Translations under genes and position numbers: made by a program
The notes under the pieces: model-generated
The model's input: the letters and a program-made list of their open reading frames with translations, nothing else
The model's database searches: none
What the model was told of the DNA's origin: nothing
Shown: positions 8,301 to 60,400 of the stretch, one piece after another
Position numbering within the stretch: the stretch's first letter is position 1
How the letters are laid out: each line of letters opens with the position of its first letter
Source: Heterodontus francisci
Lineage: Eukaryota
NCBI RefSeq assembly: GCF_036365525.1
Contig: NC_090409.1
Span: 39,442,437 to 39,506,436, forward strand
Direction: 5' to 3'
DNA: 64,000 nucleotides

Positions 8301-11300
8301 GTAGCACGTTTCTGGAGAGTGAGAGCAGCTTGATAGCACCGTTAACTCCTTCCATCACCCAGTTTGGCAGCTCTGTCCTTCAGGGCTCAGCCAGCTCGGT
8401 CAGTGGTGGTATTACCGAGTGACCCTTGGTGATGGACAGTGAAGTCCCCACTCGGTACATTCTGTGTCCTTGTTACCCTCAGTGCTTCCTCCAAATGGTG
8501 TTCAACATGGAGGAAAACTGATTCATCAGCTGAGGGAGGGCAGTAGGTGGGAATCAGCAGGAGGTGTCCAGGCCCATGTTTGACCTGAAGCTGTGAGATT
8601 TCCTGGGGTTCAGAGTCAATGTTGAGGAGTCTTGGGGTCACTCCCTCCTGACTGTATACCACTGTGTCCCCACCTCTGGTGGGTCTGTCCTGCCAGTGGG
8701 ACAGTACATACCCAGGGATGGTGATAGAGGAGACTGGGATGTAGGGTTGATTCTGTGAGTATGACTGGAGTCACATATACACCAGACCGGGAGGGACATT
8801 AGTGAACCAGTTGGGTTTTACAACAATCCAACAGCTTCATGGTCACTTTTATTGGGACCAACTTTATATTTCCAGATTTATTTTAAACTGAATTTAAATT
8901 CTGAAACTGCTATGGTGGGATTTGAACTCGTGTTTTCGGGATTATTTTTTTTTCATTCATTCATGGGATGTGGGCGTCGCTGGCCAGGCCAGCATTTATT
9001 GCCCATCCCTAATTGTCCTTGAGAAGGTGGTGGTGAGCTGCCTTCTTGAACCGCAGCAGTCCATGTGGGGTAGGTACACCCACAGTGCTGTTAGGAAGGG
9101 AGTTCCAGGATTTTGACCCAGCGACAGTGAAGGAACGGCGATATAGTTCCAAGTCAGGATGGTGTGTGGCTTGGAGGGGAACTTGTAAGTGGTGCTGTTC
9201 CCATGTATTTGCTGCCCTTGTCCTTATAGTTGGTAGAGGTCGCGGGTTTGGAAGGTGCTGTCTCAGGAGCCTTGGTGCATTGCTGCAGTGCATCTTGTAG
9301 ATGGTACACACTGCTGCCACTGTGCGTCGGTGGTGGAGGGAGTGAATGTTTGTAGATGGGGTGCCAATCAAGCGGGCTGCTTTGTCCTGGATGGTGTCAA
9401 ACTTCTTGAGTGTTGTTGGAGCAAGTGGAGAGTATTCCATCACACTCCTGACTTGTGCCTTGTAGATGATGGACAAGCTTTGTGGAGTCAGGAGGGGAGT
9501 TACTCGCCTCAGGATTCCCAGCCTCTGACTTGCTCTTGTAGCCACGGTATTTATATGGCTACTCCAGTTCAGTGTCTGGTCAATGGTAACCCCCAGGATG
9601 TTGATAGTGGGGGATTCTGCAATGGTAATGCTGTTGAATGTCAAGGGGAGATGGTTAGATTCTCTCTTGTTGGAGATGGTCATTGCCTGGCACTTGTGTG
9701 GCGCAAATGTTATTTGTCACTTCTCAGCCCAAGCCTGGATATTGTCCAGGTCTTGCTGCATTTCTACACGGACTGCTTCAGTATCTGAGGAGTCACGAAT
9801 GGTGCTGAACATTGTGCAATCAACAGCGAACATCCCCACTTCTGACCTTATGATTGAAGGAAGGTCATTGATGAAGCAGCTGAAAATGGTTGGGCCCAAG
9901 ACACTACTCTGAGGAACCCCTGCAGTGATGTCCTGGAGCTCAGATGATTGACCTCCAACAACCACAACCATCTTGCTTTGTGCTAGGTATGACTCCAGCC
10001 AGCAGAGGGTTTTCCTCCTGATTCCCATTGACCTCAGTTTTGCGAGGGTTCCTTGATGCCATACTCGGTCAAATGCTGCCTTGATGTCAAGGGCAGTCAC
10101 TCTCACCTCACCTCTGGATTACTAGTCTAGTAACATAACCACTGCACTACCGTACCCATAAAATCAGAGTAAATGCAGAATACCTGAAACAGAAACTTCT
10201 CACCTGTTACAGAGAGATCGACATCTTGATGAAAGACAACATCTGCCCTCTTGTAAAACTGACACACATACTTGTACTGGTCTGACTGCCTGAGGTCAGA
10301 GATCATAACTGACCAGTTGCCTTGTTCCAGTTGATCTTTGAACAGATTTGTTCTGTTTCTGAACCGTGGGTCTTGTAGAGTCAAATCATCATTTCCATTG
10401 GCAAACTTGTGCAAAATTCCATTCCTGAATATCCACCAAATTACCTGGAAATCAGAGACCGGGACATTCTCTTTGTAGATACAGGGCAGCACAACCTGCT
10501 CCCCAAGGAACCCAGAAACTGGGACAGACGAGTAATCTGGAAAAGATTGAAAGTATTTATCTACAGATATAACCTCCCTGCTGGTACATTCCATCCCAAG
10601 CTCCACATGGTTACACTGCGATGCTTGATTTACAAGAAGCACTGATCAGTAACTCACTGCTTTCATTTCTGTGGGAAGGTTAAAGGTCAGGCATTAAGGG
10701 CCTTCAACTAAAACCAGCTTGTGCTGGATATTTGTATCCACAGAGCAGCTGGACAGCACTTTGAATCGTGTGTTTCCCATTGTACACATGCTGGGAGAAC
10801 ACAAAAAAAGAGTTCCGAGGAAGGGTCACTGACCCGAAACGTTAACTCTGCTTCTCTTTCCACAGATGCTGCCAGACCTGCTGAGTGATTCCAGCATTTC
10901 TTGTTTTTATTTCAGGATATTAGTCACCCTGCCCACCTCCCCCCTTTGGGAGAACAATGACAGACCAGTGAACTGGCAGTGAGATCCCCAAACTACCACT
11001 GGATTTGGGACTGAGGTTTACAGACTCACCCAGGCTTCAACACTGAACCAACTAATCCGAGCTCTGCTGAAATGTGAGAGCAGTCACAGCGTTTACCTGA
11101 AACAGCAGCAACAGCATTTAGCAGCAGCAGCAGGAGGAGGAGTTTCTGTAAGTTGGGTCCCTGCAACAAGAAAACACAGTTACCCCCCTTTACCACAGTT
11201 TCTTGCTGCTCATGTCCATTTCTGAGCCGGGACAGGACACAGTCCATGGTCCCGCTCCCCATTACTGACCCTCCTCCCTCCCGGCTCTGAGACACATTGA

Positions 11301-11479
11301 GACCGGGAGCAGCCCTGACACAGTCCATGGTCCCTCTCCCCATTACTGACCCCCCTCCCTCCCGGCTCTCAGACACATTGAGACCGGGAGCAGCCCTGAC
11401 ACAGTCCATGGTCCCTCTCCCCATTACTGACCCCCCGGGTGTGAGACACTGACAATACCTGCTGTGTTTTTCTATCCAT
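2385..11479 (-). CDS. Single-IgV B7/butyrophilin-like membrane protein, copy A; exons 11459-11479, 11097-11160, 10204-10536, 3721-3823, 2385-2559 (231 aa)
   Basis: All introns GT-AG with matching phases 0/1/1/2. MDRKTQQ|GPNLQKLLLLLLLLNAVAAVS|DYSSVPVSGFLGEQVVLPC..W..QDPRFRNRTNLFKDQLEQGNWSVMISDLRQSDQYKYVC..|GPGLSTGAVVGLVVGILFLLLQGFIVIIIQKRQR|WNCVQKHH..NGAVQH*. Same structure in four paralogs. Confidence 0.85.
4250..4520 (-). mobile_element. L2-type LINE fragment (copy near 35510-35780)
   Basis: Peptide LSKLILSMRPTSCPLDPVPAKLL typical of L2 ORF2 just before the RT. Confidence 0.6.
4850..6066 (+). mobile_element. 5'-truncated CR1 (HER1-like) LINE, RT region plus 3' tail
   Basis: [43 protein letters not shown]; one in-frame stop; tail gggccgaatggcctgttcctgtgctgta..(ctttgtt)n. 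Confidence 0.93.
6067..7960 (+). mobile_element. Older degraded CR1 LINE
   Basis: Frameshifted peptides [37 protein letters not shown]. Confidence 0.9.
8385..8945 (-). mobile_element. 5' part of a tRNA-headed LINE (APE endonuclease remnant); head continues at 10113-10155
   Basis: Peptide LLLIPTYCPPSADES..GDFTVHH resembles APE; paralogs at 22320-22745, 39630-40456, 59213-59830. Confidence 0.65.
8946..10112 (-). mobile_element. 5'-truncated CR1/L2-group LINE (RT) inserted in the element above
   Basis: ALDIKAAFDRVWH, AGVPQSSVLGP, IYKAQVRSVMEY; (tgaa)n/poly-A tail; empty site in copies B and D. Confidence 0.9.
10204..10536 (-). CDS. IgV exon of copy A (phase 1-1, 333 nt)
   Basis: B-strand Cys, C-strand Trp, D-x3-Y-x-C motif, B7/BTN-like FRNRT-LF-DQL-QGN-S segment; ttccag acceptor and gtgaga donor. 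Confidence 0.93.
10802..10912. mobile_element. Penelope-like terminal-repeat fragment
   Basis: gaagggtcactgacccgaaacgttaactctgct matches 25990-26050 in reverse; absent from the paralogous introns. Confidence 0.6.
11235..11436. repeat. 81-bp intron-1 repeat, about 2.4 units (copy A)
   Basis: Reverse complement of the 54521-56740 unit. Confidence 0.9.
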
Positions 11480-11660
11480 TGCCCTGATCCTGGATCATTC
11501 CCTCCCGGACACAGGAGACTGGGAATCTGCCGCTGGGTCAGACAGTGAATATTGAAACTAACTGAGCTGCTGCTGAATCTTTACAAACAGTGAAAATGAC
11601 GGGAATCAGCCACGAAAACCTGGATCAGATTTTAAATAAACCATTTCCTGGCGCGCACGG

Positions 11661-12437
11661 CTTCTATTGGCGGTGATTCGCCCAATCAGCGGCCGGACTG
11701 GACTGTCACTCAGTGCAAGCCCCCCGGCCCCGCCCCTCGGCGGGAACAGCTTCTATTGGCGGTGATTCGACCAATCAGCGGCCGGACTGGCCTGTCACTC
11801 AGTGCTAGCCCCCCGGCCCCGCCCCTCGGCGGGAACAGCTTCTAGTGGCGGTGATTCGACCAATCAGCGGCCGGACTGGCCTGTCACTCAGTGCAAGCCC
11901 CCCGGCCCCGCCCCTCGGCGGGAACAGCTTCTATTGGCGGTGATTCGACCAATCAGCGGCCGGACTGGCCTGTCACTCAGTGCTAGCCCCCCGGCCCCGC
12001 CCCTCGGCGGGAACAGCTTCTAGTGGCGGTGATTCGACCAATCAGCGGCCGGACTGGCCTGTCACTCAGTGCAAGCCCCCCGGCCCCGCCCCTCGGCGGG
12101 AACAGCTTCTATTGGCGGTGATTCGACCAATCAGCGGCCGGACTGGACTGTCACTCAGTGCAAGCCCCCCGGCCCCGCCCCTCAGCGGGAACAGTTTCTA
12201 TTGGCGGTGATTCGCCCAATCAGCGGCCGGACTGGACTGTCACTCAGTGCAAGCCCCCCGGCCCCGCCCCTCGGCGGGAACAGCTTCTATTGGCGGTGAT
12301 TCGACCAATCAGCGGCCGGACTGGACTGTCACTCAGTGCAAGCCCCCCGGCCCCGCCCCTCGGCGGGAACAGCTTCTAGTGGCGGTGATTCGACCAATCA
12401 GCGGCCGGACCGGCCTGTCACTCAGTGCTAGCCCCGC
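11661..12437 (-). promoter_or_regulatory. 89-bp tandem repeat (about 8.7 units) built from the proximal promoter module of gene A
   Basis: Units start at 11661+89n; each carries CCAAT (most also ATTGG), CTGTCACTCA, CCCCGCCCC and GGCGGGAA; about 180 bp upstream of the ATG; the same motifs lie upstream of B and D. Confidence 0.8.
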
Positions 12438-12574
12438 CTCAGCCCCCATGGCCCCGCCCCTTGGCGGGAACAGCTTCTCGGCGCCAGGGTCCGGTTCTGT
12501 TTAGTTCCTTTCCGGTGTTCAAGGAGCAGCAGCTCTGATGTGGACGAGTGTCCTTCCAGATCCTTCTTCCCCCT

Positions 12575-13915: not shown

Positions 13916-14039
13916 CGCCTCCTCCTGTGCTGTGACAGAGAGCCAGCACAGACAGGACGGGCCGAATGGCCTCCTCCTCTGCTCTCACCATTCTCTCATT
14001 CCATTCACTTCAACCCCTTCTCCCTCCAACGGATTCTGC

Positions 14040-14150
14040 TCGCGCTGGGGGGTGGGGGTCAGACCCAGCCGCCCAATCAGCAGCCAGGCCGACCTGTCAC
14101 TCAGTGCTCGCCCCGCCCCTTGGCGGCAAGAGCTTCTCCTGGCGCCAGTG
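14040..14150. promoter_or_regulatory. Orphan copy of the CCAAT/TGTCACTCA/GC-box module
   Basis: cccaatcagcagccaggccgacctgtcactcagtgctcgccccgccccttggcgg; paralog at 29910-30035. Confidence 0.55.
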
Positions 14151-14350
14151 TGTCAGGCTCACACTGCCGAGTGTGTGTGTGTAAGCTTCACACTACTGCT
14201 CCTGTGTCTCTGCATAGATTGCAGATAGAATTCACACAGTCTCTGCATTAGAAATAGAAAAGCTCAGCAATCTCACACAATATCAGCTGAGTCCACATTG
14301 CCTCACAGCTGATTCTTATTTCTAATCTTTACAGTGGCGAGCGTCTGACA

Positions 14351-18655: not shown

Positions 18656-21600
18656 TTAGTGCTGGACAGCCCCGTTCCCCAGAAGGTTTTGTTCTCCAGC
18701 TGCTCCATTCTGATGCTCAGGTGCTGTTGTGAAACATGGGACCTTGTGACCTGAACAAGTCACCCCTGTCAAAGGGACGACATTAGATGCTTCATTTTGA
18801 TTGATGCTGTGATGATTTTGAACACAATTCCTGGGAGAGAAAAAACAGCAGAGTTCAGGTTACATTAAAAGAATCCAACACTTTGTACAAGTGTGTAAAG
18901 GAGCTGTTCAGGAACACAGACCGATTAAATTACACTCAACATCCTGGGCACCAATGGCAGCTGGAAAATGGGTCACAGGAGCTGCACGGTGATGGAGCAC
19001 AGAGTGTAGAGGAGAGGAGGCTTATAGAGGAGGCAATGGGCAAGAGCTGGACACTCCACAGGACCTGTGCTGACCGAGGCACCAGACCAATAGAAAAATG
19101 ACAGCTCACCTCAACATTGGAGATTAAGAAGAATTGATGAGGATCTCGGTTAACACTGAGCTGAATATGATGGGGATCAGATCAGACAGGAGGAGGCTGG
19201 GAATGTCTGTACTCTGCAGACTGATCCTGAATTATTGAGAGGAGTCACAGATGGACAGGTATTCCCTGATGTGATCAAACCCGACCCAGCAGTGACCAAA
19301 CAGGCTGACGGAAACAGAAATATTGTGATGGGGGAGAGTCAGAGGACAGAGTTAGAGAGTCTGCAATAATTCCCCCTCCCCACTGGCAGGTGGGTAAGAG
19401 GTGGGCAGGGAGATGTGGATGTTGAGGGAGACAGAGAAATGCAACATACCCTTGTTAGTGATTAAAACCACTGATGGCCGGGTCACAGGGGGTGATTTGA
19501 AAAATGCAATCTCTATTTGCGCTTAATCAACAACATGCATTTATGTTGCACCTTGATCATCCCAAGGTGCTTCACAGGAGCAATTATCAAACAGAATGTG
19601 TGCACCAAGATATTTGGGCTGGTGATCAAAAGCTCGGATATAGATGTAGGTTTTCAGGTGTGTCTGAAAGGAGGAGAGACAGAGAGGGACAGAGAGGTTT
19701 GGGGATAGAATTCTAGAACTTAGGGCTCAGGCAGCTAAAGGCACAGCCGCCAATGGTGGAGTGATGGAAAACAGGGGGGTGCAAGAGGCCAGAATTGGAG
19801 CAGCACAGAGATCAGGGAGGAGATTAGAGATAGGGAGGGGTGAGGCAATGGAGGGATTTGAACAGGAGGATGAATGTAGGTCAATGAGAACAGGAGTGAT
19901 GGGTAAATGGGACTTGGTGTGAGTTAGGATACGGGGCAGCAGAATTTTAGATGAGCTCAAGTTTACGGAGGGTGCAAGGTGGAATTGGCCGGGGGAACAT
20001 TGGAATAGTCGAGTCCAAAAATAACAAAGGCACGGATGAGGGTTTCAGGAGATGGGCTGAGGCGGGAGTTTCAGCAGCAGATGGGGAGAGACAGGGACTG
20101 AAATCACACAGGGGAATATCACAGGAGTAGAGGTAGGAGATCTCAGTGATGGAAACGATACAGTGTCGGAAGCTCAGCTCAGGGTCTGATAGGACTTCAA
20201 GGTTGTGAACAGTCTGGTTCAGCCTCAGACAGTGGCCAGGGAGGGGGATGGAGTCAGTGGCTGGGGAACAGAGCAAGGATCAGAGGCTGGTGAAAAGTCA
20301 GAGGAGAGGGGACAAGGTTATTTTAGGTGTAGGCTGGTGAGTTGTTTGCTGCAGAGATTAGGCGAGTGTCTATTAACTGTGTGATTGAGGGAGCCGCACA
20401 TTCCTGCTCTTCACCTTCAGTTCAGCAGCTAGAGGATGACAACAAGCTGGAAGTGACTGGATAATGCAGCATTGAAACATCCCACACAGCACAAAGTGTA
20501 TCAGTGCACACAACATTTCCACAACACCAAATATAATAAAACAAAACTAGAATTAACAATGGGAACTGCAGAACATTCCAGAACTCACCATCTTTGTTGC
20601 TTTCCGATTACGAGAATAAAACCCAGAATTATGCAAACAAGAACAAGAATTATGCAAACAAGAACAAGAATTGCGATGACCAATCCAACTACTGCTCCAG
20701 TAGAGGGTCCAGGACCTAGAGACAGAATGAAGCTGTTAACAGACTGGGACACACTAACAACACTAACAAAACTAACAGCAGAGACAGTCAGCACCTAGTG
20801 TTTCAGAACCATCCCCAGTGCAAACACATCCCTGGTCAATTCTAGTCCTGGAGGAATGTGGGAGGTCAGATATCAATAATCTCACACACACACATCCCCC
20901 CACAATGTGATCGATACATGCTTTCCAATGGAGATAACTGGACACTGACCAGCAGCAGCTGTAAATCTGAGTTCTTTTTGCCTTCAGTCTGGTTCAGTAA
21001 ATATACCGAGTCGGATGTGTCGGGAAAATCAATTACTTTATTTGCGCATTTAGCCGGCTGACTTACTCTAATGCAACGACACTGACTCCACCCAGAGTCT
21101 GTCTGGTCCACTAGAGTAAGTGAAGTTTTTTTGATACAGGTACTACTGTTTATACATTAAGATTCATGCTGCACCCCCTTGTTTAACCAATCAGTGCGAT
21201 ACAATTCGACTTCACCCACGTGGTGACATGCAGTACATCTGTTACTGAGGTTACAATACACTCTATTCTCCATACATACTTGTTACTAATAAAATATTGT
21301 TTTGTACCAGCAAGATAAAAGAAAGCGGACAAGCAAGCTAATTAGCAAGAGCATAGGAATCATCAATAATCATTCTAGTCTCACTCCCTACATGGATCAT
21401 GAGTCTGTCTCTACCTTGTGACAAGTAATTGCGGAGCATCCTGCTATCTCTATTAGGTTTACATTCCTGAGTGTTTCGTGCAGTCTGCAGCTACATCAAG
21501 TAGTGGCAGCTCACGAAGATAAGAGGGGCCTAGCACTCCTTATCACTCACACAGGGATGGACATCATTTGATTCACAGAGTCCATTTGTTCCAAACCACA

Positions 21601-24600
21601 GGGAGTCACACAATCAGACCATAAAGAACAGATGTCCTTGCAATTACCAGTGTCGGCTAGTCTTTACAGTCTCACACGCTCTGCCTTTACTTTTAACTAT
21701 TTCATTGTGGTTTCTGCCACTTAAAATCAAAGCTCAGCAGAGCGACTATTCCTAACTTGGCTATATTTCCCATGAAGCATAGTGCCATGCCTTTCTGCTC
21801 ACTTCCACACAGCCTCCCTTCAATTAAACCCAACAGCTCGCTGAAATGGAGCGGGAATTTTAAAATAATTTGCCGGTTTGGAGAACCATGGGATTGGGTG
21901 GAACACGGTTTATACGTGTATCAATATTACTCCTCATTGACTTAATACTGAGGACTCCTGGGGTCACTCCCACCTGACTGTACACCACAAGAGCTAAAAG
22001 CACATGCAGTAGTTTAGAAACAGATTTACCTGGTACAGGTGTGTTCGGTACAGGTGTGTTCGGTACAGGTGTACGAGCTCGCTCTAAAGAAAACATCATG
22101 TGTTTAGTACTGTGTGTGAAACAAACTGTAGAAATGTTCAAAGACTATAGGGCTGTGGGGAAACACATCCCGGGAGAAACGAGACTCGGGAAAACTGATC
22201 AGGAAGGATCAGGAACAGGGTCGGCAGAGTGAAAAATGGTGCTATGGGCCCCACTTTCTGCACCCCAACATCTGGAGACAGATGTAGCACATTTCTGGAG
22301 AGTGAGAGCAGCTTGATAGCACCGTGGGTTTGCCTTTGCTGTGTCCGAATTCGATGTCTGGGTCACAGCCAGTGGTCCGTTCAGTTTTATTCTTGTTTTT
22401 CTTTCTAGTGGTTTGATACAAACTGATTGAAGTGGCCGAGCAGGTCAGAGGGCAGTTAAAAGGCAACCAGGTTAATGTGTGACTGGTGTCACATATCGAC
22501 CAGACCGGGTAAGGATGGCAGATTTCCTTCCCGAGAGGGACATCAGTGAACCAGTTGGGTTTTACAACAATCCAACAGCTTCATGGTCACTTTTATTGGG
22601 ACCAACTTTATATTTCCAGATTTATTTTAAACTGAATTTAAATTCTGAAAGTGCCATGGTGGGATTTGAACTCACATTCTCTGGATTATTAGTCCAGGCC
22701 TCTGGATTACTAGTCTAGTAACATCACCACTGCATTACCGTACCCATAAAATCAGAGAGTAAATGCAGAATACCTGAAACAGAAACCTCTCACCTGTTAC
22801 AAAGAGATGAACATCTTGATGAAAGACTGGAGTCTCCCTCTGTTGAATCTCACACCGATACTCATTCTGGTCTGACTGCCTGAGGTCAGAGATCATGAGT
22901 GACCAGTTGCCTTGTTCCAGTTGATCTTTGAACAGGTTTGTTCTGTTTCTGAACTGTGGGTCTTGTAGTGTCAAATCATCGTTCCCATCGATAAATCTGT
23001 GTAAAATTCCACGATTGAATATCCACCAAATTACCTGTAAATCAGAGACCGGGACATTCTCTTTCTGGATACAGGGCAGCACAACCTGCTCCCCAAGGAA
23101 TCCAGAAACTGAGACAGGCATGTAACCTGGAAAAGATTGAAAGTATTTATCCACAGATATAACCTCCCTGCTGGTACATTCCATCCCAAGCTCCACATGG
23201 TTACACTGCGATGCTTGATTTACAAGAAGCACTGATCAGTAACTCACTGCTTTCATTTCTGTGGGAAGGTTAAAGGTCAGGCATTAAGGGCCTTCAACTA
23301 AAACCAGCTTGTGCTGGATATTTGTATCCAGAGCAGCTGGACAGCACTTTGAATCGTGTGTTTCCCATTGTACACATGCTGGGAAAACACATCAGGATAT
23401 TGGTCACCCTGCCCACCTCCCCCCTTTGGGAGAACAATGACAGACTGGGGGGGGGCACAATGTGAGGTGGAGCTCAGGAGCAGAAAACTGACCCTGAAAT
23501 GTAAAGACAGGAACGGGTGGGGGAGGGGGTACCAGAGGATGTGGAAAGGGCTTTGGACAGGTTGGGGGGACAATGATGGACGAGTATACTGTGTAGGGGG
23601 TGAGGCAGCACCTGATGGTCTGAAAGGGGCCGAGGTAATGTGGATCCTCACCTCCCTCCACCACTAACCTGTCAGACCTTGCTCCTCACCCCAATACGGC
23701 CAGACTCTGCCCCCTCCCAGGACCCAAAACACAATCCCCAGTCCTGATGACCCTACTCCCCATGCTCAGAGGCAATTCCCAGTTCTATTTGATCCAGGAC
23801 TGTCCCAGACTCCTGATCCCAGTGCTCAGGACCCCATCCCAGTACCACTGGATCCCAGACACCCATCCCAGTGTCACCGAGTGTTGCTCAGTGTCCAGAT
23901 TCCACTGTTCACATCACAGGGGTTAATCTGAAGACATTAACTGCCTTCATTTCAGGTCTCATGATCATTATGTGTAATGTGAACCGACTGTGTCCACTCC
24001 CTCAATGGGCCCACTCACAGTGAACACAGCACCTTAAAGCAAGATAAATTCCTGACAAAATGAACACTATTCCCCAGTAATATACACATTACTGATTTCA
24101 GTCCCAGACACCCAGACAAATGTTCTTTCCAGGAGACAGCTAACTGCAGTCTGTATAAATTCACAAGGTTAGCACCATCCAGGAAGATCAATCCTGATAT
24201 AATCCATGTCACCAGCAGCCCCGAGCTCTGCTGAAATGAGAGAGCAGTCACAGCGTTTACCTGAAACAGCAGCAACAGCATTTAGCAGCAGCAGCAGGAG
24301 GAGGAGTTTCTGTAAGTTGGGTCCCTGCAACAAGAAAACACAGTTACCCCCCTTTACCACAGTTTCTTGCTGCTCATGTCCATTTCTGAACCGGGACAGG
24401 ACACAGTCCATGGTCCCTCTCCCCATTACTGACCCTCCCTCCCTCCCGGCTCTGAGACACTGAGACCGGGAGCATCCCTGACACAGTCCATGGTCCCTCT
24501 CCCCATTACTGACCCCCCTCCCTCCCGGCTCTGAGACACATTGAGACCGGGAGCAGCCCTGACACAGTCCATGGTCCCTCTCCCCATTACTGACCCCCCG

Positions 24601-24829: not shown

Positions 24830-25090
24830 TCTTGGCGGGAACGGCTTCTATTGGCAGTCAGGGCCGGGGTCAGAGCAGATTGCCCAATCAGCGGCAGGGT
24901 CGGCCTGTCACTCCGTGCTAGCCCCAGCCTCTGACGCCAGTGGCGGGTTCAAAGCCAGCCGCCCAATCAGCGGCAGGGACGGCCTGTCACTCCATGCTAG
25001 CCCCGCCTCTGACGCCAGCGGCGGGTTCAAAGCCAGCCGCCCAATCAGCGGCAGTATCGGCCTGTCACTCAGTGCTAGCCCCGCCCCGTG
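24830..25090 (-). promoter_or_regulatory. Proximal promoter of B, three tandem CCAAT-TGTCACTC modules
   Basis: gcccaatcagcggcag..cggcctgtcactc three times, ATTGG, GC box, ggcgggaa. Confidence 0.65.
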
Positions 25091-25094
25091 TGTT

Positions 25095-42600: not shown

Positions 42601-44222
42601 ATCCACCTGTTTGGTCACCTTCTCGAAAAACTCAATAAGGTTTGTGAGGCACGACCTACCCGTCACAAAACCGTGCTGACTATCGCTAATAAGGAACTCC
42701 TGCAGTGATGTCCTGGAGCTCAGATGATTGACCTCCAACAACCACAACCATCTTCCTTTGTGCTAGGTATGACTTCAGCCAGCGGAGGGTTTTCCCCGAT
42801 TCCCATCGACCTCAGTTTTGCGAGGGCTCCTTGATGCCATATTCGGTCAAATGCTGCCTTGATGTCAACGGCAGTCACTCTCACCTCACCTCTGGATTAC
42901 TAGTCCAGGCCTCTGGATTACTAGTCTAGTAACATAACCACTGCACTACTGTACCAATAAAATCAGAGTAAATGCAGAATACCTGAAACAGAAACTTCTC
43001 ACCTGTTACAGAGAGATCGACATCTTGATGAAAGACAACATCTGCCCTCTTGTAAAACTGGCACACATACTTGTACTGGTCTGACTGCCTGAGGTCAGAG
43101 ATCATAACTGACCAGTTGCCTTGTTCCAGTTGATCTTTGAACAGGTTTGTTCTGTTTCTGAACCGTGGGTCTTGTAGTGCCAACTCATCATTTCCATTGA
43201 CAAATCTGTGTAAAACTCCGCGCTTGAATATCCACCAAATTACCTGGAAATCAGAGACTGGGACATTCTCTTTGTAGACACAGGGCAGCACAACCTGCTC
43301 CCCAAGGAACCCAGAAACTGGGACAGGCGAGTAACCTGGAAAAGATTGAAAGTATTTATCCACAGATATAACCTCCCTGCTGGTACATTCCATCCCAAGC
43401 TCCACATGGTTACACTGCGATGCTTGATTTACAAGAAGCACTGATCAGTAACTCACAGCTTTCATTTCTGTGGGAAGGTTAAAGGTCAGGCATTAAGGGC
43501 TTTCAACTAAAACCAGCTTGTGCTGGATATTTGTATCCACAGAGCAGCTGGACAGCACTTTGAATCGTGTGTTTCCCATTGTACACATGCTGGGAGAACA
43601 CATCAGGATATTGGTCACCCTGCCCACCTCCCCACTTTGGGAGAACAATGACAGACCAGTGAACTGGCAGTGAGATCCCCAAACAAACACTGGATTTGGG
43701 ACTGAGGTTTACAGAATCACCCAGGCTTCAACACTGAACCAACTAATCCGAGCTCTGCTGAACGTGAGAGCAGTCACAGCGCTTACCTGAAACAGCAGCA
43801 ACAGCATTTAGCAGCAGCAGCAGGAGGAGGAGGAGTTTCTGTAAGTTGGGTCCCTGCAACAAGAAAACACAGTTACCCCCCTTTACCACAGTTTCTTGCT
43901 GCTCATGTCCATTTCTGAACCGGGCTGTGTCACTGTGTCCCCCACCCCTGGGTGTAGATTAACAGCTAGGTGTTTATTTTCAGTTTAAACACAGTTTCTC
44001 TCGCTCCATCTCCTGTCTGACATTTCTCCTTTTATAAATGAGACCCTGCCCCAGGGTCAGGAAGACAAATCCCCGAAATGGAACAAACTCTTCCCCTTTT
44101 TAGAGGGAGACAAACAATAAAGAGGCGAATCCTCGGGGAGAGAAAGGAAAGTTTCCCCCACATCCCCCTCCCTCTCCCCGGGTGTGAGACACTGACAATA
44201 CCTGCAGCGCTTTTCCATCCAT
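33659..44222 (-). CDS. Single-IgV B7/butyrophilin-like membrane protein, copy C; exons 44202-44222, 43787-43853, 43003-43335, 34994-35096, 33659-33833 (232 aa)
   Basis: Exon 1 MDGKALQ|gtattg; exon 2 has one extra Leu codon; TM and tail exons match copy A; frame intact. Confidence 0.83.
36098..37313 (+). mobile_element. CR1 LINE (duplicate of 4850-6066)
   Basis: Same RT peptides and same stop. Confidence 0.93.
37314..39207 (+). mobile_element. Older CR1 LINE (duplicate of 6067-7960)
   Basis: Same degraded peptides. Confidence 0.9.
40457..42892 (-). mobile_element. CR1/L2-group LINE (same insertion as 8946-10112), interrupted by a nested CR1
   Basis: ctctggatta duplicated at the flanks; RT peptides in ORF 40751-41512. 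Confidence 0.88.
41441..42690 (-). mobile_element. Young nested CR1 LINE, C-specific
   Basis: Long open RT frame (ORF 41518-42747), (ttctaa)n tail, aggaa on both sides. Confidence 0.92.
43003..43335 (-). CDS. IgV exon of copy C
   Basis: Within ORF 42926-43441; V-set motifs. Confidence 0.93.
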
Positions 44223-44334
44223 TCTCCCGAACCCTGATCATCCCCTCTCGGAGACGGAGACAGGGAATCTGCTGCTCAACCCGGATCGGCCAACTGCGCC
44301 TGTTATACTTTGAAACACAGGGACGATAGGGGTA

Positions 44335-45088
44335 TGGTCCAGACAGAGGGGAATCAGTCCCGGTCCCCGTGTCTGTGTCTCTGTCCAGACAGAGGGGGGG
44401 ATCAGTCCCAGTCCCTGTGTCTGGGTTCAGACAGATGGGGATCAGTCCTGGTCCCTGTGTCTGGGTCCAGACAGAGGGGAATCAGTCCTAACCCCTGTGT
44501 CTGGGTCCAGACAGAGGGGGATCAGTCCTGGTCCCAGTGTCTGGGTTCAGACAGAGGGGGATCAGTCCGAGTCCCTGTGTCTGGGTCCAGACAGAGGGGG
44601 ATCAGTCCCAGTCCCCGTGTCTGGGTCCAGACAGAGGGGGATCAGTCCCAGTCCCCGTGTCTATGTCAGGGTCCAGACAGAGGGGAATCAGTCCCGGTCC
44701 CTGTGTCTGGGTCCAGACAGAGGATGATCAGTCTGGGTCCCTGTGTCTGGGTCCAGACAGAGAGGGATCAGTCCCGGTCCCTGTATCTGGGTCCAGACAG
44801 AGGGGGATCAGTCCCGGTCCCTGTATCTGGGTCCAGACAGAGGGGGATCAGTCCTAGTCCCTGTGTCTGGGTCCAGACAGAGGGGGATCAGTCCCGGTCC
44901 CCGTGTCTGGGTCCAGAAAGAGGGGGATCAGTCCCGGTCCCCGTGTCTGGGTCCAGAAAGAGGGGGATCAGTCCCGGACTCTGTGTCTGTGTCTGGGTCC
45001 AGACTGAGAGGGGAGTCAAACCCAGTCCCAGTCCCTGTGTCTGGGTCCAGACAGAGAGGGATCAGTCCTGGTCCCTGTGTCTGGGTCC
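44335..45088. repeat. About 40-bp minisatellite, about 18 units, upstream of gene C
   Basis: ctgggtccagacagagggggatcagtcccggtccctgtgt. Confidence 0.95.
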
Positions 45089-45620
45089 ATGTGGAGTATG
45101 CACACCATTCTGCTGTTAGGAAGGATGTTGCAGGATTTTGACCCAGCGACAGTTCTACTCGGGATGGTGTGTGGCTTGGAGGGGAACTTGCAGGTGGTGG
45201 TGTTCCCATGCATCTGCTGCCTTTGTCCTTCTAGTTGGTAGAGGTCATGGGTTTGGAAGGTGTTGTCTAAGGAGCCTTGGTGCATTGCTGCAGTGCATCT
45301 TGTAGATGGTACACACTGCTGCCACTGTGTGTCGGTGGTGGAGAGAGTGAATGTTTGTAGATGGGGTGTCAATCAAGCGGGCTGCTTTGTCCTGGATGGT
45401 GTCGAGCTTCTTGAGTGTTGTTGGAGCTGCACTCATCCAGGCAAGTGGAGAGTCTTCCATCACACTCCTGACTTGTGCCTTGTCGATGGTGGACAGGCTT
45501 TGGGGAGTCGGGAGGTGAGTTACTCGCCTCAGGATTCCCAGTCTCTGACCTGCTCTTGTAGTCACAGTATTTATATGGCTGGTCCAGTTCAGTTTCTGGT
45601 CAATGGTAACCCCCAGAATG
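45089..45620 (-). mobile_element. CR1/L2-group LINE fragment
   Basis: ILGVTIDQKLNWTSHINTV..KAQVRSVME. Confidence 0.88.
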
Positions 45621-50447: not shown

Positions 50448-50639
50448 GAAAGTGTCAGAAATACTCAGCAGATCTGGCAGCATCTGTGTAGAGAGAAACA
50501 GAGTTAACATTTCAAGTATCTGACCTTCCATCAGAACCTGGAATGTTAACCCTGTTTCTCTTTACTTGCTGAGTATTTCCAGCACTTTCTGTTTTTATTT
50601 CAGAGATCCAGCATCTGCAGTATTTTGCTTTTCCGCATG

Positions 50640-51474: not shown

Positions 51475-51548
51475 TGGACCCTAATGAGATTTGAACTCAC
51501 AACTCATGGTTTACAAGACCAGCTCTCTAACCCCTGAATAATGGAGCC
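51475..51548 (-). pseudogene. Degenerate tRNA-Thr(TGT)
   Basis: ggctccattattcaggggttagagagctggtctTGTaaaccatgagttgtgagttcaaatctcattagggtcc aligns with vertebrate tRNA-Thr-TGT but has stem mismatches. Confidence 0.75.
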
Positions 51549-54476: not shown

Positions 54477-57400
54477 ATGGATAGAAAAGCACAGCAGGTA
54501 TTGTCAGTGTCTCACACCCGGGGGGTCAGTCATGGGGAGAGGGACCATGGACTGTTTCAGGGCTGCTCCCGGTCTCAATGTGTCTCAGAGCCGGGAGGGA
54601 GGGGAGTCAGTAATGTGGAGAGGGACCATGGACTGTGTCAGGGCTGCTCCCGGTCTCAATGTGTCTCAGAGCCGGGAGGGAGGGGGGTCAGTAATGGGGA
54701 GAGGGACCATGGACTGTGTCAGGGCTGCTCCCGGTCTCAATGTGTCTCAGAGCCGGGAGGGAGGAGGGTCAGTAATGGGGAGAGGGACCATGGACTGTGT
54801 CAGGGCTGCTCCCGGTCTCAATGTGTCTCAGAGCCGGGAGGGAGGGAGGTCAGTAATGGGGAGAGGGACCATGGACTGTGTCAGGGCTGCTCCCGGTCTC
54901 AATGTGTCTCAGAGCCGGGAGGGAGGGGGGTCAGTAATGGGGAGAGGGACCATGGACTGTGTCAGGGCTGCTCCCGGTCTCAATGTGTCTCAGAGCCGGG
55001 AGGGAGGAGGGTCAGTAATGGGGAGAGGGACCATGGACTGTGTCAGGGCTGCTCCCGGTCTCAATGTGTCTCAGAGCCGGGAGGGAGGGAGGTCAGTAAT
55101 GGGGAGAGGGACCATGGACTGTGTCAGGGCTGCTCCCGGTCTCAATGTGTCTCAGAGCCGGGAGGGAGGGGGGTCAGTAATGGGGAGAGGGACCATGGAC
55201 TGTTTCAGGGCTGCTCCCGGTCTCAATGTGTCTCAGAGCCGGGAGGGAGGGGAGTCAGTAATGTGGAGAGGGATCATGGACTGTGTCAGGGCTGCTCCCG
55301 GTCTCAATGTGTCTCAGAGCCGGGAGGGAGGAGGGTCAGTAATGGGGAGAGGGACCATGGACTGTGTCAGGGCTGCTCCCGATCTCAATGTGTCTCAGAG
55401 CCGGGAGGGAGGGGGGTCAGTAATGGGGAGAGGGACCATGGACTGTGTCAGGGCTGCTCCCGGTCTCAATGTGTCTCAGAGCCGGGAGGGAGGGGGGTCA
55501 GTAATGGGGAGAGGGACCATGGACTGTGTCAGGGCTGCTCCCGATCTCAATGTGTCTCAGAGCCGGGAGGGAGGGGGGTCAGTAATGGGGAGAGGGACCA
55601 TGGACTGTGTCAGGGCTGCTCCCGGTCTCAATGTGTCTCAGAGCCGGGAGGGAGGGAGGTCAGTAATGGGGAGAGGGACCATGGACTGTGTCAGGGCTGC
55701 TCCCGGTCTCAATGTGTCTCAGAGCCGGGAGGGAGGGGGGTCAGTAATGGGGAGAGGGACCATGGACTGTTTCAGGGCTGCTCCCGGTCTCAATGTGTCT
55801 CAGAGCCGGGAGGGAGGGGAGTCAGTAATGTGGAGAGGGACCATGGACTGTGTCAGGGCTGCTCCCGGTCTCAATGTGTCTCAGAGCCGGGAGGGAGGGG
55901 GGTCAGTAATGGGGAGAGGGACCATGGACTGTGTCAGGGCTGCTCCCGGTCTCAATGTGTCTCAGAGCCGGGAGGGAGGGGGGTCAGTAATGGGGAGAGG
56001 GACCATGGACTGTGTCAGGGCTGCTCCCGATCTCAATGTGTCTCAGAGCCGGGAGGGAGGGGGTCAGTAATGGGGAGAGGGACCATGGACTGTGTCAGGG
56101 TTGCTCCCGGTCTCAATGTGTCTCAGAGCCGGGAGGGAGGGGGGTCAGTAATGGGGAGTGGGACCATGGACTGTGTCAGGGCTGCTCCTGGTCTCAATGT
56201 GTCTCAGAGCCGGGAGGGAGGTCAGTCATGGGGGGAGGGACCATGGACTGTGTCAGGGCTGCTCCCGGTCTCAATGTGTCTCAGAGCCGGGAGGGAGGGG
56301 GGTCAGTAATGGGGAGAGGGACCATGGACTGTGTCAGGGCTGCTCCCGGTCTCAATGTGTCTCAGAGCCGGGAGGGAGGGAGGTCAGTAATGGGGAGTGG
56401 GACCATGGACTGTGTCAGGGCTGCTCCCGGTCTCAATGTGTCTCAGAGCCGGGAGGGAGGGGGGTCAGTAATGGGGAGAGGGACCATGGACTGTGTCAGG
56501 GCTGCTCCCGGTCTCAATGTGTCTCAGAGCCGGGAGGGAGGGGGGTCAGTAATGGGGAGAGGGACCATGGACTGTGTCAGGGCTGCTCCCGGTCTCCATG
56601 TGTCTCAGAGCCGGGAGGGAGGGGAGTCAGTAATGGGGAGAGGGACCATGGACTGTGTCAGGGCTGCTCCCGGTCTCAATGTGTCTCAGAGCCGGGAGGG
56701 AGGAGGGTCAGTAATGGGGAGAGGGACCATGGACTGTGTCCTGTCCCGGTTCAGAAATGGACATGAGCAGCAAGAAACTGTGGTAAAGGGGGGTAACTGT
56801 GTTTTCTTGTTGCAGGGACCCAACTTACAGAAACTCCTCCTCCTGCTGCTGCTGCTAAATGCTGTTGCTGCTGTTTCAGGTAAACGCTGTGACTGCTCTC
56901 ACATTTCAGCAGAGCTCGGGGCTGCTGGTGATATGGATTATATCAGGATTGATCTTCCTGGATGGTGTTAACCTTGTGAATTTATACAGACTGCAGTTAG
57001 CTATCTCCTGGAAAGAACATTTGTCTGGGTGTCTGGGACTGAAATCAGTAATGTGTATATTACTGGGGAATCTTCTTCTTCTTTGGCCTCCTTGTCTCGA
57101 GAGACAATGGGTAAGCGCCTAGAGGTGGTCAGTGGTGTCAGTCGCTGTGAGGCAACTATGGAGTGACCTCTCCATGGCGCATGCCTGGGCGAATGTATGG
57201 AGGTTGAGAGTTGCCCAAGCGTCAAAACCCCCCTCTCGGCCTTTCTGGTGGGGTCCAAAGGAGTGCAGAGCACGACGTTTGGCACCGGTAGTATTCATTA
57301 TATCAGGAATTCATCTTGCTTTAAGGTGCTGTGTTCACTGTGAGTGGGCCCATTGAGGGAGTGGACACAGTCGGTTCACATTACACATAATGATCATGAG

Positions 57401-60400
57401 ACCTGAAAGGAAGGCAGTTAATGTCTTCAGATTAACCCCTGTGATGTGAACAGTGGAATCTGGACACTGAGTGTTAGTGAGAATGAATCTAGAAGAATCA
57501 CTCGACACTTGGGTCTGCTCCAATGTCAAACAGTTTATTGAGTTACGCCAGCAGGGAGCAGGTCACTGGGCTGTCCAGATGCCCCTCCACTGAACAATGA
57601 AAAATCATCAATACTTATACATTTTCAAACAGTTACTCAGCCCATCCTTTCTGGACATGGTCCAATCATAATGATTACAGATTCTCTCCATTGATTATTA
57701 AAGACCAATAGAAGTGGTTACCAGGTGTGAAAGGGGCTGCAGGACCAACCCATGGACAGATAGGGGATTACTCATGATGTTTTCCATTCCTTTCTAGTCC
57801 CCATCCTTGGTTCTCCTGTACGCACACCACCTTATCTTAACCTTGTTACAGGCTGGTATCTTTGTCAGCATTCCACATGGACATCTGCTCTCCATTGAAT
57901 AAGTCTTTGAATTTATGTTACTCAGTTCCTGTGTGGAATGTGGTCAAGTTGGCTAAACCCCATGATGCCTTGCAAACTCTTCATTGTTCACTAAAATTAC
58001 GTTACGAGTTACTCAAATAACATTTAAACAGGATGTTCTTTTCTGCAGGTGCCTCTGCGCTTGGGAATACCCGTCAACACTGAGCAACACTCGGTGACAC
58101 TGGGATGGGGTCCTGAGCACTGGGATCAGGAGTCTGGGACAGTCCTGGATCAAATAGAACTGGGAATTGCCTCTGAGCATGGGGAGTAGGGTCATCAGGA
58201 TTGGGGATTGTGTTTTGGGTCCTGGGAGGGGGCAGAGTCTGGCCGTATTGGGGTGAGGAGCAAGGTCTGACAGGTTAGTGGTGGAGGGAGATGAGGATCC
58301 ACATTGCCTCGGCCCCTTTCAGACCATCAGGTGCTGCCTCACCCCCTACACAGTGTACTCATCCGTCATTGTCCCCCCAACCTGTCCAAAGCCCTTTCCA
58401 CATCCTCGGGTACCCCCTCCCCCACCCGTTCCTGTCTTTACATTTCAGGGTCAGTTTTCTGCTCCTGAGCTCCACCTCACATTGTGCCCCCCCCAGTCTG
58501 TCATTGTTCTCCCAAAGGGGGGAGGTGGGCAGGGTGACCAATATCCTGATGTGTTCTCCCAGCATGTGTACAATGGGAAACACACGATTCGAAGTGCTGT
58601 CCAGCTGCTCTGTGGATACAAATATCCAGCACAAGCTGGTTTTAGTTGAAGGCCCTTAATGCCTGACCTTTAACCTTCCCACAGAAATGAAAGCAGTGAG
58701 TTACTGATCAGTGCTTCTTGTAAATCAAGCATCGCAGTGTAACCATGTGGAGCTTGGGATGGAATGTACCAGCAGGGAGGTTATATCTGTGGATAAATAC
58801 TTTCAATCTTTTCCAGGTTACTTGCCTGTCCCAGTTTCTGGGTTCCTTGGGGAGCAGGTTGTGCTGCCCTGTATCTACAAAGGGAATGTCCCAGTCTCTG
58901 AGTTACAGCTAATTTGGTGGATATCCAATCGTGAAATTTTACACAGATTTATCGATGGGAACGATGACTTAATACAACAAGACCCACGGTTCAGAAACAG
59001 AACAAACCTGTTCAAAGATCAACTGGAGCAAGGCAACTGGTCACTAATGATCTCTGACCTCATGCAGTCAGACCAGAATGAGTATCAGTGTCAGATTTAC
59101 AAGAGGATCGGTGAGCACTATCAATGGCAACAAGCTGATTCAGTCCATCTCTCTGTAACAGGTGAGAGGTTTCTGTTTCAGGTATTCTGCATTTACTCTC
59201 TGATTTTATGAGTACGGTAGTGCAGTGGTTATGTTACTGGACTAGTAATCCAGAAGCCTGGACTAATAATCCAGAGAACGTGGCTTCAAATCCCACCATG
59301 GCACTTTCAGAATTGAAATTCAGTTTAAAATAAATCTGGAAATATAAAGTTGGTCCCAATAAAAGTGACCATGAAGCTGTTGGATTGTTGTAAAACCCAA
59401 CTGGTTCACTAATGTCCCTCTCGGGAAGGAAACCTGCCGTCCTTACCCGGTCTGGTCTATATGTGACTCCTGTCCCACATTAACCTGGTTAACTTTTAAC
59501 TGCCCTCTGATTTGCTCGGTTACTTCAATCAGTTTGTATCAAACCACTAGAAAGAAAAAACAGACTAAAACTGAACAGACCACTGGCTGTGACCCAGACA
59601 TCAAATCAGGACACAGCAAAGGCAAACCCAGCCCAGTTGACACTGCAAAGTCCCCCTCGCTGACATCTGGAAATTGGTCTCCATGTTAGGCGAGCTGTGT
59701 GACAGTCATACTCACAGAATCAACCCTCCAACCCAGACTCCTCTATCACCATCCCTGGGTATGTCTTGTCCCACTGGCAGGACAGACCCACCCGAGGTGG
59801 GGGCACAGTGGTATCCAGTCAGGAGGGAGTTTTTTATTCTTTTGCTGCATTTGCTGACAATGCATCCACTCGGTGTCGCAATACTTGCACATGTGAAAAT
59901 GCAGCCTGATCCACTGAAACGTCGCTGTCTGTGACCTTTTTGGCAGCTGCCAGTAATAAAGATGGCGACGCTCAATTTATCACAAAACAAATGAAACACA
60001 AATGCCCACAGTGGCTGTGATCACTGCCTCCATCACACCCCCAACAGTACCTCGCTCCCTCCTGCCATCACCACCTCCATCCCACCCCCAGCAATACCTC
60101 GCTCCCTCCTGCCATCGCCACCTCCATCAGTACCTCGCTCCCTCCTGACATCACTACCTCCATCCCACCCCCAGCAGTACCTCGCTCCCTCCTGCCTTCG
60201 CCACCTCCATCCCACCCCCAGCAGTACCTCGCTCCCTCCTGCCTTCGCCACCTCCATCCCACCCCCAGCAGTACCTCGCTCCCTCCTGCCATCGCCACCT
60301 CCATCCCACCCCCAGCAGTACTTCGCTCCCTCCTGACATCACTACCTCCATCCCACCCCCAGCAGTACCTCACTCCCTCCTGCCATCACCATCGCCATCC

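Follow-up and report, generated by a model that had tools for sequence, protein, structure and literature searches.

The 64,000-nt window that we analysed (Heterodontus francisci NC_090409.1) carries four tandem or inverted copies, A to D, of a gene that is specific to sharks and codes for a small type I membrane protein. Each copy encodes a leader, a single B7-H4/PD-L1-like IgV domain, a short Pro/Thr stalk, a transmembrane (TM) segment and a tail of 55 to 57 residues. The V exons lie at 10204..10536 (A), 22794..23126 (B) and 43003..43335 (C) on the minus strand and at 58817..59161 (D) on the plus strand, and were placed by their motifs, splice borders and Pfam V-set matches (E = 1.9e-11, 1.1e-12, 3.4e-12 and 4.3e-11, respectively). 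All four have canonical AG/GT borders and are in phase 1 at both ends, with lengths of 333, 333, 333 and 345 nt; the F-G hairpin of V exon D is 4 codons longer, the length typical of the family. No further V-like exon was detected in the window at E values up to 10, nor any further Ig-like exon.

The leader exon of A (11097..11160, minus strand; 0/64 differences in all six pairs) has counterparts at 24261-24324 (B, minus), 43787-43853 (C, minus, with one additional Leu codon) and 56816-56879 (D, plus). The stalk exon of B (22030..22083, minus, 54 nt) encodes Pro/Thr/Val/Asn repeats and corresponds to 4618-4671 in A and 35881-35919 in C (39 nt), both on the minus strand; no counterpart for D was found in the window. 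The TM exon, recognised in B from its sequence and an RNA-like joint (20589..20715, minus), is matched at 3721-3823 (A, minus), 34994-35096 (C, minus) and 62130-62250 (D, plus). The exon coding for the cytoplasmic tail lies at 18656..18830 in B (minus), with counterparts at 2385-2559 (A, minus), 33659-33833 (C, minus) and 63396-63564 (D, plus), and differs between copies at 0 to 13 positions in 169 to 175 nt. None of the three tails scanned against Pfam matched any family above the cut-off. Gene C lacks an in-frame ATG at the position of exon 1 and may be defective.

The genes are spliced and expressed. In RNA-like contigs, the depth of gene B exon bins is approximately 1e5 vs approximately 1e2 for introns, a difference of about 1000-fold. 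Its joints are canonical (20713>22028 and 22083>22794 at the stalk exon, 18829>20588 between tail and TM exons, and 23124(+2)>24259), and those at 22083>22794 and 23124(+2)>24259 confirm the borders of V exon B. For genes A and D, the A-type V letter string and the D-type F-G string each occur as a loose end in RNA-like contigs. Contigs of other runs contain further V variants beside these two strings. A transcript form without the TM exon is also seen in RNA-like contigs.

The V domains have the canonical Cys-Trp-Cys core (C18, W33 and C91), conserved in all four copies together with the Pfam V-set match. The top Foldseek match is the IgV domain of B7-H4 (4gos; TM 0.82, E=2e-11), followed by PD-L1 IgV chains (TM 0.79 to 0.84), and the best sequence matches are CD276 (E=4e-16), VTCN1 (3e-14) and PD-L1. 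Homolog matches show a multi-copy family restricted to sharks, some members of which are named butyrophilin-like in databases. Our literature searches found no study of this single-V B7-like shark family. No living lineage with antibody- and TCR-based immunity is older than the sharks, yet this multi-copy, highly expressed B7-like family in them carries automatic database names only.

Divergence of the V exon and its flanks

A preliminary description of this DNA had quoted eight motifs, and six-frame translation located every one of them where it had been placed. The C-C' region reads WWIFRNGILHKFAN in A, WWIFNRGILHRFID in B, WWIFKRGVLHRFVN in C and WWISNREILHRFID in D, and the F-G region reads CQFYKRADVVF in A and C, CEIQQRETPVF in B and CQIYKRIGEHYQW in D. 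FRNRTNLFKDQLEQGNWS, which contains the sequons NRT and NWS and had been called invariant, is indeed present in all four copies. The A and C exons, for which about 18 nucleotide differences and 10 amino acid changes had been given, differ at 18/333 nt; nine amino acid changes fall in the 110 whole codons and the tenth in the split first codon, which starts AT in A and GT in C. The TM exons of A and C are identical (0/103), in line with the earlier observation, and the remaining pairs have 11 to 19 differing positions plus indels. For intron 2, the low A-C divergence stood and the exact count (about 3 in 260 nt) did not: we counted 5/321 in the 3' part and 2/41 in the first part, besides a 108-nt insertion present in A only.

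The 3' part of intron 2 forms a near-identical block in all four copies, at 10537..10965 in A (minus, including the 108-nt insertion), 23127..23445 in B (minus), 43336..43656 in C (minus) and 58496..58816 in D (plus). RNA-like depth in the B block is 70 to 107, showing that it is not an exon. Every pair differs here at just 2 to 5 of 319 to 321 nt, and none of the six pairs shows a difference in the leader exon, in intron 1 or at the end of exon 1. The V exon has 18 to 54 pairwise differences in 333 nt and is much more diverged than both flanks, with 73/333 variable sites among the four copies vs 7/319 in the 3' part of intron 2 and 9/93 just downstream. Pooled non-coding sequence next to exons has 11 to 27 differences in 811 to 833 nt (1.4 to 3.2%). 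The upstream border of the divergence is sharp and, in each of the four copies, lies at the exon border, and the 14 sites in the exon that group A with C and B with D have no equivalent upstream (0). Near-identity between copies extends to the tail exon, at its synonymous sites and in its 3' UTR.

Replacement divergence in the V exon is 2.8 to 7.2 times the flanking level (Fisher p 6e-12 to 4e-7 in five pairs, 0.018 for A-C). Synonymous divergence, at 4.5 to 8.0 times the flanking non-coding level, is raised as much, so that exon and intron differ in age or homogenisation and not only through a burst of amino acid change. Such an excess of exon over intron divergence, with synonymous change raised equally, must not be read as dN/dS above 1.

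The preliminary description had placed the variation on the predicted GFCC' ligand-binding face, and it does fall on the segments forming the C, C', C'', F and G strands. With domain halves assigned from an AlphaFold model of the copy D V domain (pLDDT 96.2), amino acid-variable codons number 31/51 in the C-C'-C''/F-G half vs 9/59 in the A-B-D-E half (Fisher p=1e-6). Along the exon, variable sites amount to 9/62 in the A-B strands, 27/101 from B-C to C'', 6/97 from C''-D to E-F and 31/73 in F-G. The peak thus has two summits, one over the B-C loop and the C, C' and C'' strands and the other over the F-G hairpin, and the valley between them is the invariant D-E segment with its two glycosylation sequons. 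B7 proteins bind CD28-family or other receptors through the front (A'GFCC') sheet. PD-L1 binds its receptor through the C, C', F and G strands (PMC10974325), and by analogy the front sheet is probably the binding face in these proteins. Six PD-L1 hot-spot positions could be aligned, of which three vary among the four copies and three (Q30, I32 and W34) do not.

Other sharks show a related pattern. Entropy in the shark family is higher at the positions that vary in the window (mean 1.23 vs 0.59, p=1.7e-5), and a bias towards the front half is present in five of six comparisons of paralogs or of V1 with V2 (p=0.0006-0.02). The bias is absent in both presumed ortholog trios, which differ at just 9 and 11 of 114 positions. 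That presumed orthologs are conserved suggests fixed specificities of the paralogs and not an arms race still under way.

Codon tests and competing explanations

The diversifying selection proposed in the preliminary description is partly supported: the placement of the variation holds, but codon ratios give no robust value above 1. Pairwise dN/dS in the V exon is 0.37 to 1.00, and maximum likelihood estimates of omega are 1.07 over the whole exon, 1.10 in its front half, 0.69 in its back half and 1.09 at outward-facing and loop codons, none of which differs from 1. The M7 vs M8 type of site model had been suggested as a check. Tests on the four nucleotide sequences gave signals for M2a (p=0.015 against M1a) and M8 (M2a and M8 p=0.015, 0.016 and 0.004 in all), but these were lost when alignment columns 97-108, the F-G tip, were dropped (p=0.47) or masked in copy D alone (p=0.29). 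The signal is fragile, since it rests on the ambiguously aligned F-G tip of copy D. Replacement-variable and synonymous-variable codons stand at 31:9 in the front half and 9:5 in the back half, with no significant difference (p=0.48); the halves differ in overall rate and not in the kind of change.

The best reading, to which we give a probability of roughly 55%, is that selection keeps the V exons different against gene conversion, with paralog-specific binding as the outcome. Gene conversion or unequal exchange would most likely keep most of each gene alike between copies (leader exon, intron 1, the 3' part of intron 2, exon flanks and tail), and selection would maintain, and perhaps add to, front-sheet differences that give each paralog its own binding specificity; short imported patches or complex multi-nucleotide changes probably contribute too. 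A divergence peak between homogenised flanks, such as that seen here, fits conversion among paralogs with selection sparing one part, and PMC3924837 describes this signature for duplicated genes. The low flank values could also reflect local homogenisation without selection, or constraint near splice sites, given that some long non-coding blocks are 6 to 12% diverged (A-B 81/900 and 63/543, B-D 58/852).

These blocks, together with omega values indistinguishable from 1 in every partition and the equally raised synonymous divergence, are what would be expected if no selection for diversity had acted. The V exons would then be the oldest un-homogenised parts of the genes, with front-sheet surface residues drifting under relaxed constraint and conversion tracts from the flanks halting at dense mismatches, so that the island maintains itself. 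The A-C profile is likewise mosaic, with 0.2 to 1% divergence over 500-7000 and approximately 4 to 5% over 8500-10100, downstream of V, which bears out the earlier caution about the diverged intron-3 LINE next to V, and with 1% at the 3' end of the V exon and 11% at 10400-10499. However, the genes are spliced and strongly expressed with reading frames and core residues kept, the upstream border of the island falls on the exon border in four of four copies, and replacement divergence in comparisons with D (0.14-0.17) exceeds that of every long non-coding block (4.5-6.8%). The same domain half also differs between paralogs in the five other shark comparisons, with presumed orthologs conserved. 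We regard neutral drift as unlikely, but as more probable than the alternatives that follow.

It is improbable that the flanks are alike through functional constraint, for example on elements for splicing or regulation in intron 2 and around the leader, the exon only appearing diverged by comparison. In other sharks, gene models that read into the introns yield almost identical translations over some 13 codons at the end of intron 2 (P0004) and some 15 codons at the start of intron 3 (P0005), and in a related species a contig for the 3' end of intron 2 differs at 1/168 letters vs 15/166 for a V-exon contig, both of which would fit such constraint. Against this, approximately 320 nt at 98 to 99% identity far exceeds what splice signals need, the block tolerates the 108-nt insertion in copy A, it has no Rfam match and an RNA-like depth at intron level, and the near-identical tail synonymous sites and 3' UTR fit homogenisation better. 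We give an equally low probability to a patchwork imported by short conversion tracts from distant family members outside the window, with no benefit to the animal. Nine of the 11 A-specific changes do lie within 47 nt (alignment columns 924-970), several restore family-consensus residues such as the Lys of the H-K-F motif, and adjacent positions changed on one and the same lineage more often than expected (8 pairs, permutation p=0.0004). The window, however, holds no donor, with no further V-like exon at E values up to 10, and neutral import explains neither the border at the exon edge nor why the patches avoid the D-E segment, synonymous sites included. The clustering of multi-nucleotide changes might also suggest a mutational hot spot, such as AID-like germline hypermutation, but WRC/GYW motifs are not enriched (6/25 mutated G/C sites vs 29/138 G/C sites overall, p=0.79). 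An assembly artefact is opposed by the V variants in contigs of other runs and by the presence of the copies on one contig with different flanks and insertions; hot spot or artefact is hardly credible.

Relation to known receptor families

The single-exon peak resembles the Teshima and Innan model (PMC3924837) and exon 5 of the red and green opsins, in which one exon is diverged between alike flanking introns and synonymous divergence is raised inside the peak. Here the copies number four instead of two, one exon carries two summits, and dozens of codons vary instead of two key sites. As a natural case of a divergence peak, the window is a clean one. Two short stretches, the C-C' turn region and the F-G hairpin, are the likely specificity-determining segments, which makes domain-swap binding experiments straightforward.

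MHC peptide-binding exons, KIR, CEACAM and NITR genes have a diverse ligand-facing exon and an otherwise homogenised sequence, and the shark genes, also an immune-type Ig-superfamily cluster, are alike in this respect. In contrast to those systems, the diversity seen here is between paralogs. A CEACAM1 paper (PMC7042247) bears on this comparison.

A more speculative and rather improbable extension is a germline-encoded recognition repertoire, in which each paralog would carry its own front-sheet code (C-C' turn and F-G hairpin), fixed within the species and read by a matching diversified family of partners. Such partners, carried by shark lymphocytes, might for instance be NKp30-like receptors or gamma-delta TCR V segments, much as mammalian butyrophilins pair with V-gamma chains. 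Gene conversion and selection would together keep a common chassis with distinct codes, and TM-exon skipping could supply secreted decoys.

Among B7 proteins, the V-set fold of B7-H4, B7-H3 and PD-L1 is shared, and so, in the sequence alignments, is the D-E signature R-x-R-T-x-L-F-x-D-x-L-x-x-G-N-x-S. Solved B7 IgV domains are, however, just 23 to 27% identical to the shark V domain, and the shark copies, members of a many-copied family found only in sharks, have no IgC domain, the V exon joining a 39- to 54-nt stalk exon and then the TM exon. Unlike butyrophilin and BTNL proteins, they have no B30.2 (PRY/SPRY) domain; the tail has 55 to 57 residues, and none of the three tails scanned reached the cut-off of a Pfam family. 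MOG has the same architecture as the shark copies, a single IgV domain with a TM segment, and matches them in sequence at E=1.6e-9 to 2.5e-9.

Gene structure, family identity and expression

The V exons, which code for the outer IgV domain, lie at 10204-10536 (gene A), 22794-23126 (B) and 43003-43335 (C) on the (-) strand and at 58817-59161 (D) on the (+) strand. All are bounded by AG and GT and are in phase 1 on either side; those of A, B and C measure 333 nt, and that of D, with four additional codons in its F-G region, measures 345 nt. The exon order of each gene in the window is exon 1, leader, V, stalk, TM and tail. The ATG of exon 1 sits inside an 81-nt minisatellite, the leader exon is 64-67 nt long, the Pro/Thr-rich stalk exon 39-54 nt (none was detected for D in the window), and the tail exon comprises 55-57 codons, with no domain found in a Pfam scan of three tails. 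An IgC exon is absent from the window. Exons were translated and searched singly rather than as joined gene models.

The 5' region of gene C (43854-45300, (-) strand) retains the leader exon and 28 nt at the end of exon 1, while the sequence upstream of these has been replaced and contains stops. No in-frame ATG is found within 43854-45300 where A, B and D start within the 81-nt repeat, and a 40-nt minisatellite of 18 copies occupies 44336-45089. Gene C may therefore be defective or use an alternative first exon, which would conflict with a count of four intact genes. The 81-nt minisatellite with the presumed start codon spans 54520-56740 in D (27.5 copies), 11236-11436 in A and 24400-24599 in B (2.5 copies each). 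Every unit has in-frame ATGs, and copy number could alter the N-terminus or translation.

All four V exon translations gave V-set Pfam matches (E=1e-11 to 1e-12). Among solved sequences, the closest matches are CD276 (E=4e-16), VTCN1/B7-H4 (3e-14) and PD-L1 (1e-10), together with MOG and butyrophilins. A search of 1.84 billion representatives returned 2869 proteins at E<=0.001, among which the close homologs (61-70% identity) are exclusively from sharks (Chiloscyllium, Hemiscyllium, Cetorhinus, Carcharodon, Rhincodon, Stegostoma and Pristiophorus). Their automatically assigned names include "CD276 antigen homolog", "butyrophilin-like protein 2" and "uncharacterized", and they have a V-TM or V-linker-V-TM architecture. 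Unlike B7 family members the shark proteins have no IgV-IgC pair, and unlike butyrophilins no B30.2 domain; the most fitting description is a shark-specific single-V B7-like family, with a V domain that is B7 IgV-like in modelled fold and, putatively, in working. Our literature search found no published description of this family; supplementary files, which lay outside the search, might list such genes.

Contigs of runs X5 and X6, and of X9 and X10 from a related organism, were aligned to gene B. Summed depth is 5e4 to 5e5 in the exon bins of gene B and 50-300 in repeat-free introns, and canonical joints were found at 23124(+2)>24259, 22083>22794, 20713>22028 and 18829>20588. Since depth is confined to exons and splice joints are present, we take the runs to be RNA. 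The read evidence consists of contigs, and depth pools all paralogs at least 88% alike, so that expression is demonstrated for the family rather than for each copy. A further joint in X5 and X6 omits the TM exon of gene B and connects the tail directly to the stalk (18829 to 22029); by our reading of exon phases, the tail frame would be shifted and a secreted product is predicted. Among the loose ends of contigs are V strings of the A type and the D type, as well as one or more additional variants. Within 22846-23090 of the gene B V exon, loose ends and other letters in all four runs represent further V variants in transcripts, one of which has a long F-G form with an ending unlike that of D. 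In the related species, V-exon contigs differ from B by about 9% and intron contigs by 0.5-7%.

Position of the variation and codon tests

The preliminary description placed the variation of the V domain on the predicted GFCC' ligand-binding face and ascribed it to diversifying selection. Its observations hold up well: six-frame translation recovers every quoted motif within the four V exons, and FRNRTNLFKDQLEQGNWS, the D-E segment with two N-glycan sequons, is identical in all four copies, with two synonymous differences (codons 63 and 70) in the DNA. A and C differ at 18 of 333 exon nucleotides, giving nine amino acid changes in whole codons plus one in the split first codon, and at 0/103 positions of the TM exon. 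Intron 2 differs at 5/321 and 2/41 positions between them, besides an insertion of 108 nt, and divergence in the intron downstream of V amounts to 4-5%, as the description had cautioned. The insertion is exclusive to A (intron 2, 10537-10965, (-) strand) and lies inside an otherwise near-identical block; it resembles a short interspersed repeat.

The D domain, which has the long F-G form, was modelled with AlphaFold from a 55-row alignment (pLDDT 96.2). The model shows strands A (4-8), B (14-19), C (29-35), C' (39-45), C'' (48-49) and D (62-64), a short helix (66-71) and strands E (76-78), F (87-97) and G (100-113); its Foldseek neighbours are the IgV domains of B7-H4 (TM 0.82) and PD-L1. With a front half (C, C', C'', F and G; codons 28-54 and 87-114) split off by secondary structure and not by coordinates, codons variable at the amino acid level make up 31/51 of this half and 9/59 of the back half (Fisher p=1e-6), which bears out the claimed clustering. 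Variable nucleotide sites form two summits and one valley along the exon, with 9/62 in A-B, 27/101 from the B-C loop to C'', 6/97 from the C''-D loop to E-F, and 31/73 in F-G. The same positions vary elsewhere: in 19 V domains of other sharks, mean entropy is 1.23 at sites variable in the window and 0.59 at the remainder (p=1.7e-5), and is highest at the C-C' turn (36-38), position 46 and the F-G hairpin (96-108).

Six of the PD-L1 hot-spot residues named in PMC10974325 could be placed on the shark domain by HMMER alignment. Ile54, Tyr56 and Glu58 correspond to Q30, I32 and W34, which are invariant in the four copies, and Gln66, Arg113 and Met115 to positions 43, 90 and 92, which are variable. 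G-strand hot spots are unalignable and would, by position, meet the indel and the highest variation.

Nucleotide tests used the four window copies, with homologs entering as proteins; codon models were fitted in a home-made GY94/F3x4 likelihood program with no BEB step on the tree ((A,C),(B,D)). Nei-Gojobori dN/dS ranges from 0.37 (A-C) to 1.00 (B-D), with dS of 0.11-0.24, and M0 omega is 1.07. Across the four copies, M1a versus M2a gave 2dlnL=8.34 (p=0.015; omega 5.7 at 16% of sites), M7/M8 p=0.016 and M8a/M8 p=0.004, with naive posteriors above 0.9 at sites 90, 97, 98 and 99. We do not rely on this support, which falls to p=0.47 without columns 97-108 and to p=0.29 when D alone is masked there. 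At this F-G tip the indel leaves the alignment of D arbitrary, and B differs from A and C at 7 of 9 consecutive nucleotides. The preliminary description regarded a lack of sites with dN/dS above 1 as fatal to diversifying selection; such sites appear in the full alignment and their support goes with the tip, so that this part of the claim is left halfway.

The halves of the domain differ in total rate, with tree lengths of 1.50 (front) and 0.32 (back) substitutions per codon. Omega is 1.10 in front and 0.69 in the back, and 1.09 for outward-facing plus loop codons and 0.93 for inward-facing ones (classes derived from strand alternation); none of these differs from 1. Synonymous variation is somewhat denser in front (9/51 versus 5/59 codons, p=0.17), and the two halves have the same proportion of replacement-variable to synonymous-variable codons (p=0.48).

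Divergence of the V exons against their flanks

The contrast between exon and flanks, i.e., the adjoining non-coding sequence, is a stronger signal than the codon tests. Comparison of all four copies gives 7 variable sites in the 3'-most 319 nt of intron 2, against 73 in the 333-nt exon, whose first nucleotide is already variable. All 14 sites supporting the AC|BD split fall within the exon, with 0 upstream. Pairs differ at 18-54/333 positions of the V exon and at 11-27/811-833 (1.4-3.2%) of the pooled non-coding sequence beside exons, and every pair is identical over the end of exon 1 (0/31), intron 1 (0/33) and the leader exon (0/64). Relative to the flanking level, replacement divergence is 2.8-7.2-fold and synonymous divergence 4.5-8.0-fold, with all twelve Fisher tests significant (6e-12 to 0.018). 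Since the excess extends to synonymous sites, adaptive point changes arising in a burst once the genes had recently duplicated cannot by themselves account for it; in effect, the V exon has a greater age than its flanks. Divergence in longer non-coding blocks is uneven, at 3.6-11.6% between A and B and about 4.5-6.8% in comparisons with D, except for one 156-nt block at 16%. Between A and C, divergence is 0.2-1% over 500-7000, rises to 2-3% over 7000-8500 and to about 5% over 8500-10100, drops to 1% in the 3' third of the exon, reaches 11% at 10400-10499 and is 1-3% upstream; such a mosaic is the expected residue of repeated partial gene conversion.

Theory presented in PMC3924837 holds that conversion between duplicates, combined with selection for difference in a small region, yields a "peak of divergence" with low divergence around it, as exemplified there by opsin exon 5. 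The V exons, with two summits on segments of the front sheet, fit this model and are a further example of an already known type of pattern. On account of this fit we consider it most likely, with a probability of roughly 0.55, that selection maintains front-sheet differences between the paralogs, corresponding to different binding specificities, on a common homogenised chassis. Gene conversion would homogenise the shared chassis, and selection would keep the front sheets, and with them the binding specificities, distinct. In other sharks, five of six V1-V2 or paralog comparisons are biased to the front (p=0.02, 0.005, 0.012, 0.0006 and 0.0007; one 0.28). Two presumed ortholog trios (two Chiloscyllium species and Hemiscyllium), their orthology assumed from names and 90% clustering, differ at 9/114 and 11/114 positions, unbiased. 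At the sequence level this comparison favours paralog specificities that would be fixed, in preference to a continuing arms race.

An omega near 1 would equally suit an old exon that has persisted neutrally while its surface residues drifted. We think this rather unlikely, as it leaves unexplained why the borders coincide with the exon edges, why the genes are expressed and why the pattern recurs across sharks. Constraint on the flanks, which would make the exon stand out by default, is hinted at by intron read-through translations conserved in gene models of other sharks and by a contig of the related species beside the V exon with 1/168 letters different. Against it, an Rfam scan gave neither a structured RNA nor another known element for the conserved intron, gene A tolerates a 108-nt insertion there, and the tail exon and 3' UTR are equally homogeneous, so that we hold flank constraint to be improbable.

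Some of the divergence in the exon seems to be of imported or complex origin: 9 of 11 A-specific changes fall inside 47 nt, some of them restoring family-consensus residues, and adjacent changes on the same lineage are in excess (8 pairs, p=0.0004). No conversion donor was found within the window. Import of such patches by neutral processes, in place of selection-maintained front sheets, has a small chance of being the explanation. Hypermutation or an assembly artefact is very improbable; AID-type hot spots show no enrichment in the exon (p=0.79).

Transmembrane and stalk exons and repeats in the window

The TM exons (A 3721-3823, B 20589-20715, C 34994-35096, D 62130-62250) also diverge above the level of their flanks. 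A and C are separated from B and D by 19/103 positions and by indels of 18 to 24 nt, and the flanking intron differs at 2/77 and 3-6/81 positions. In B and D the indels resemble a tandemly duplicated Leu/Val/Cys/Ile-rich unit, and misalignment of this repeat may account for some of the mismatches counted. Stalk exons (A 4618-4671 and B 22030-22083, 54 nt each; C 35881-35919, 39 nt) are composed of 15-nt repeats (T-P-V-P/L-N units) in variable copy number.

The sole Rfam match in the window, between genes C and D at 51476-51548 on the (-) strand (36.2 bits), is tRNA-like and may represent either a tRNA gene or a repeat of tRNA origin. Upstream of gene A lies an 89-nt tandem array of 8.7 copies (11660-12435), and a related 78-nt array of 2.6 copies (24882-25085) is located upstream of B.
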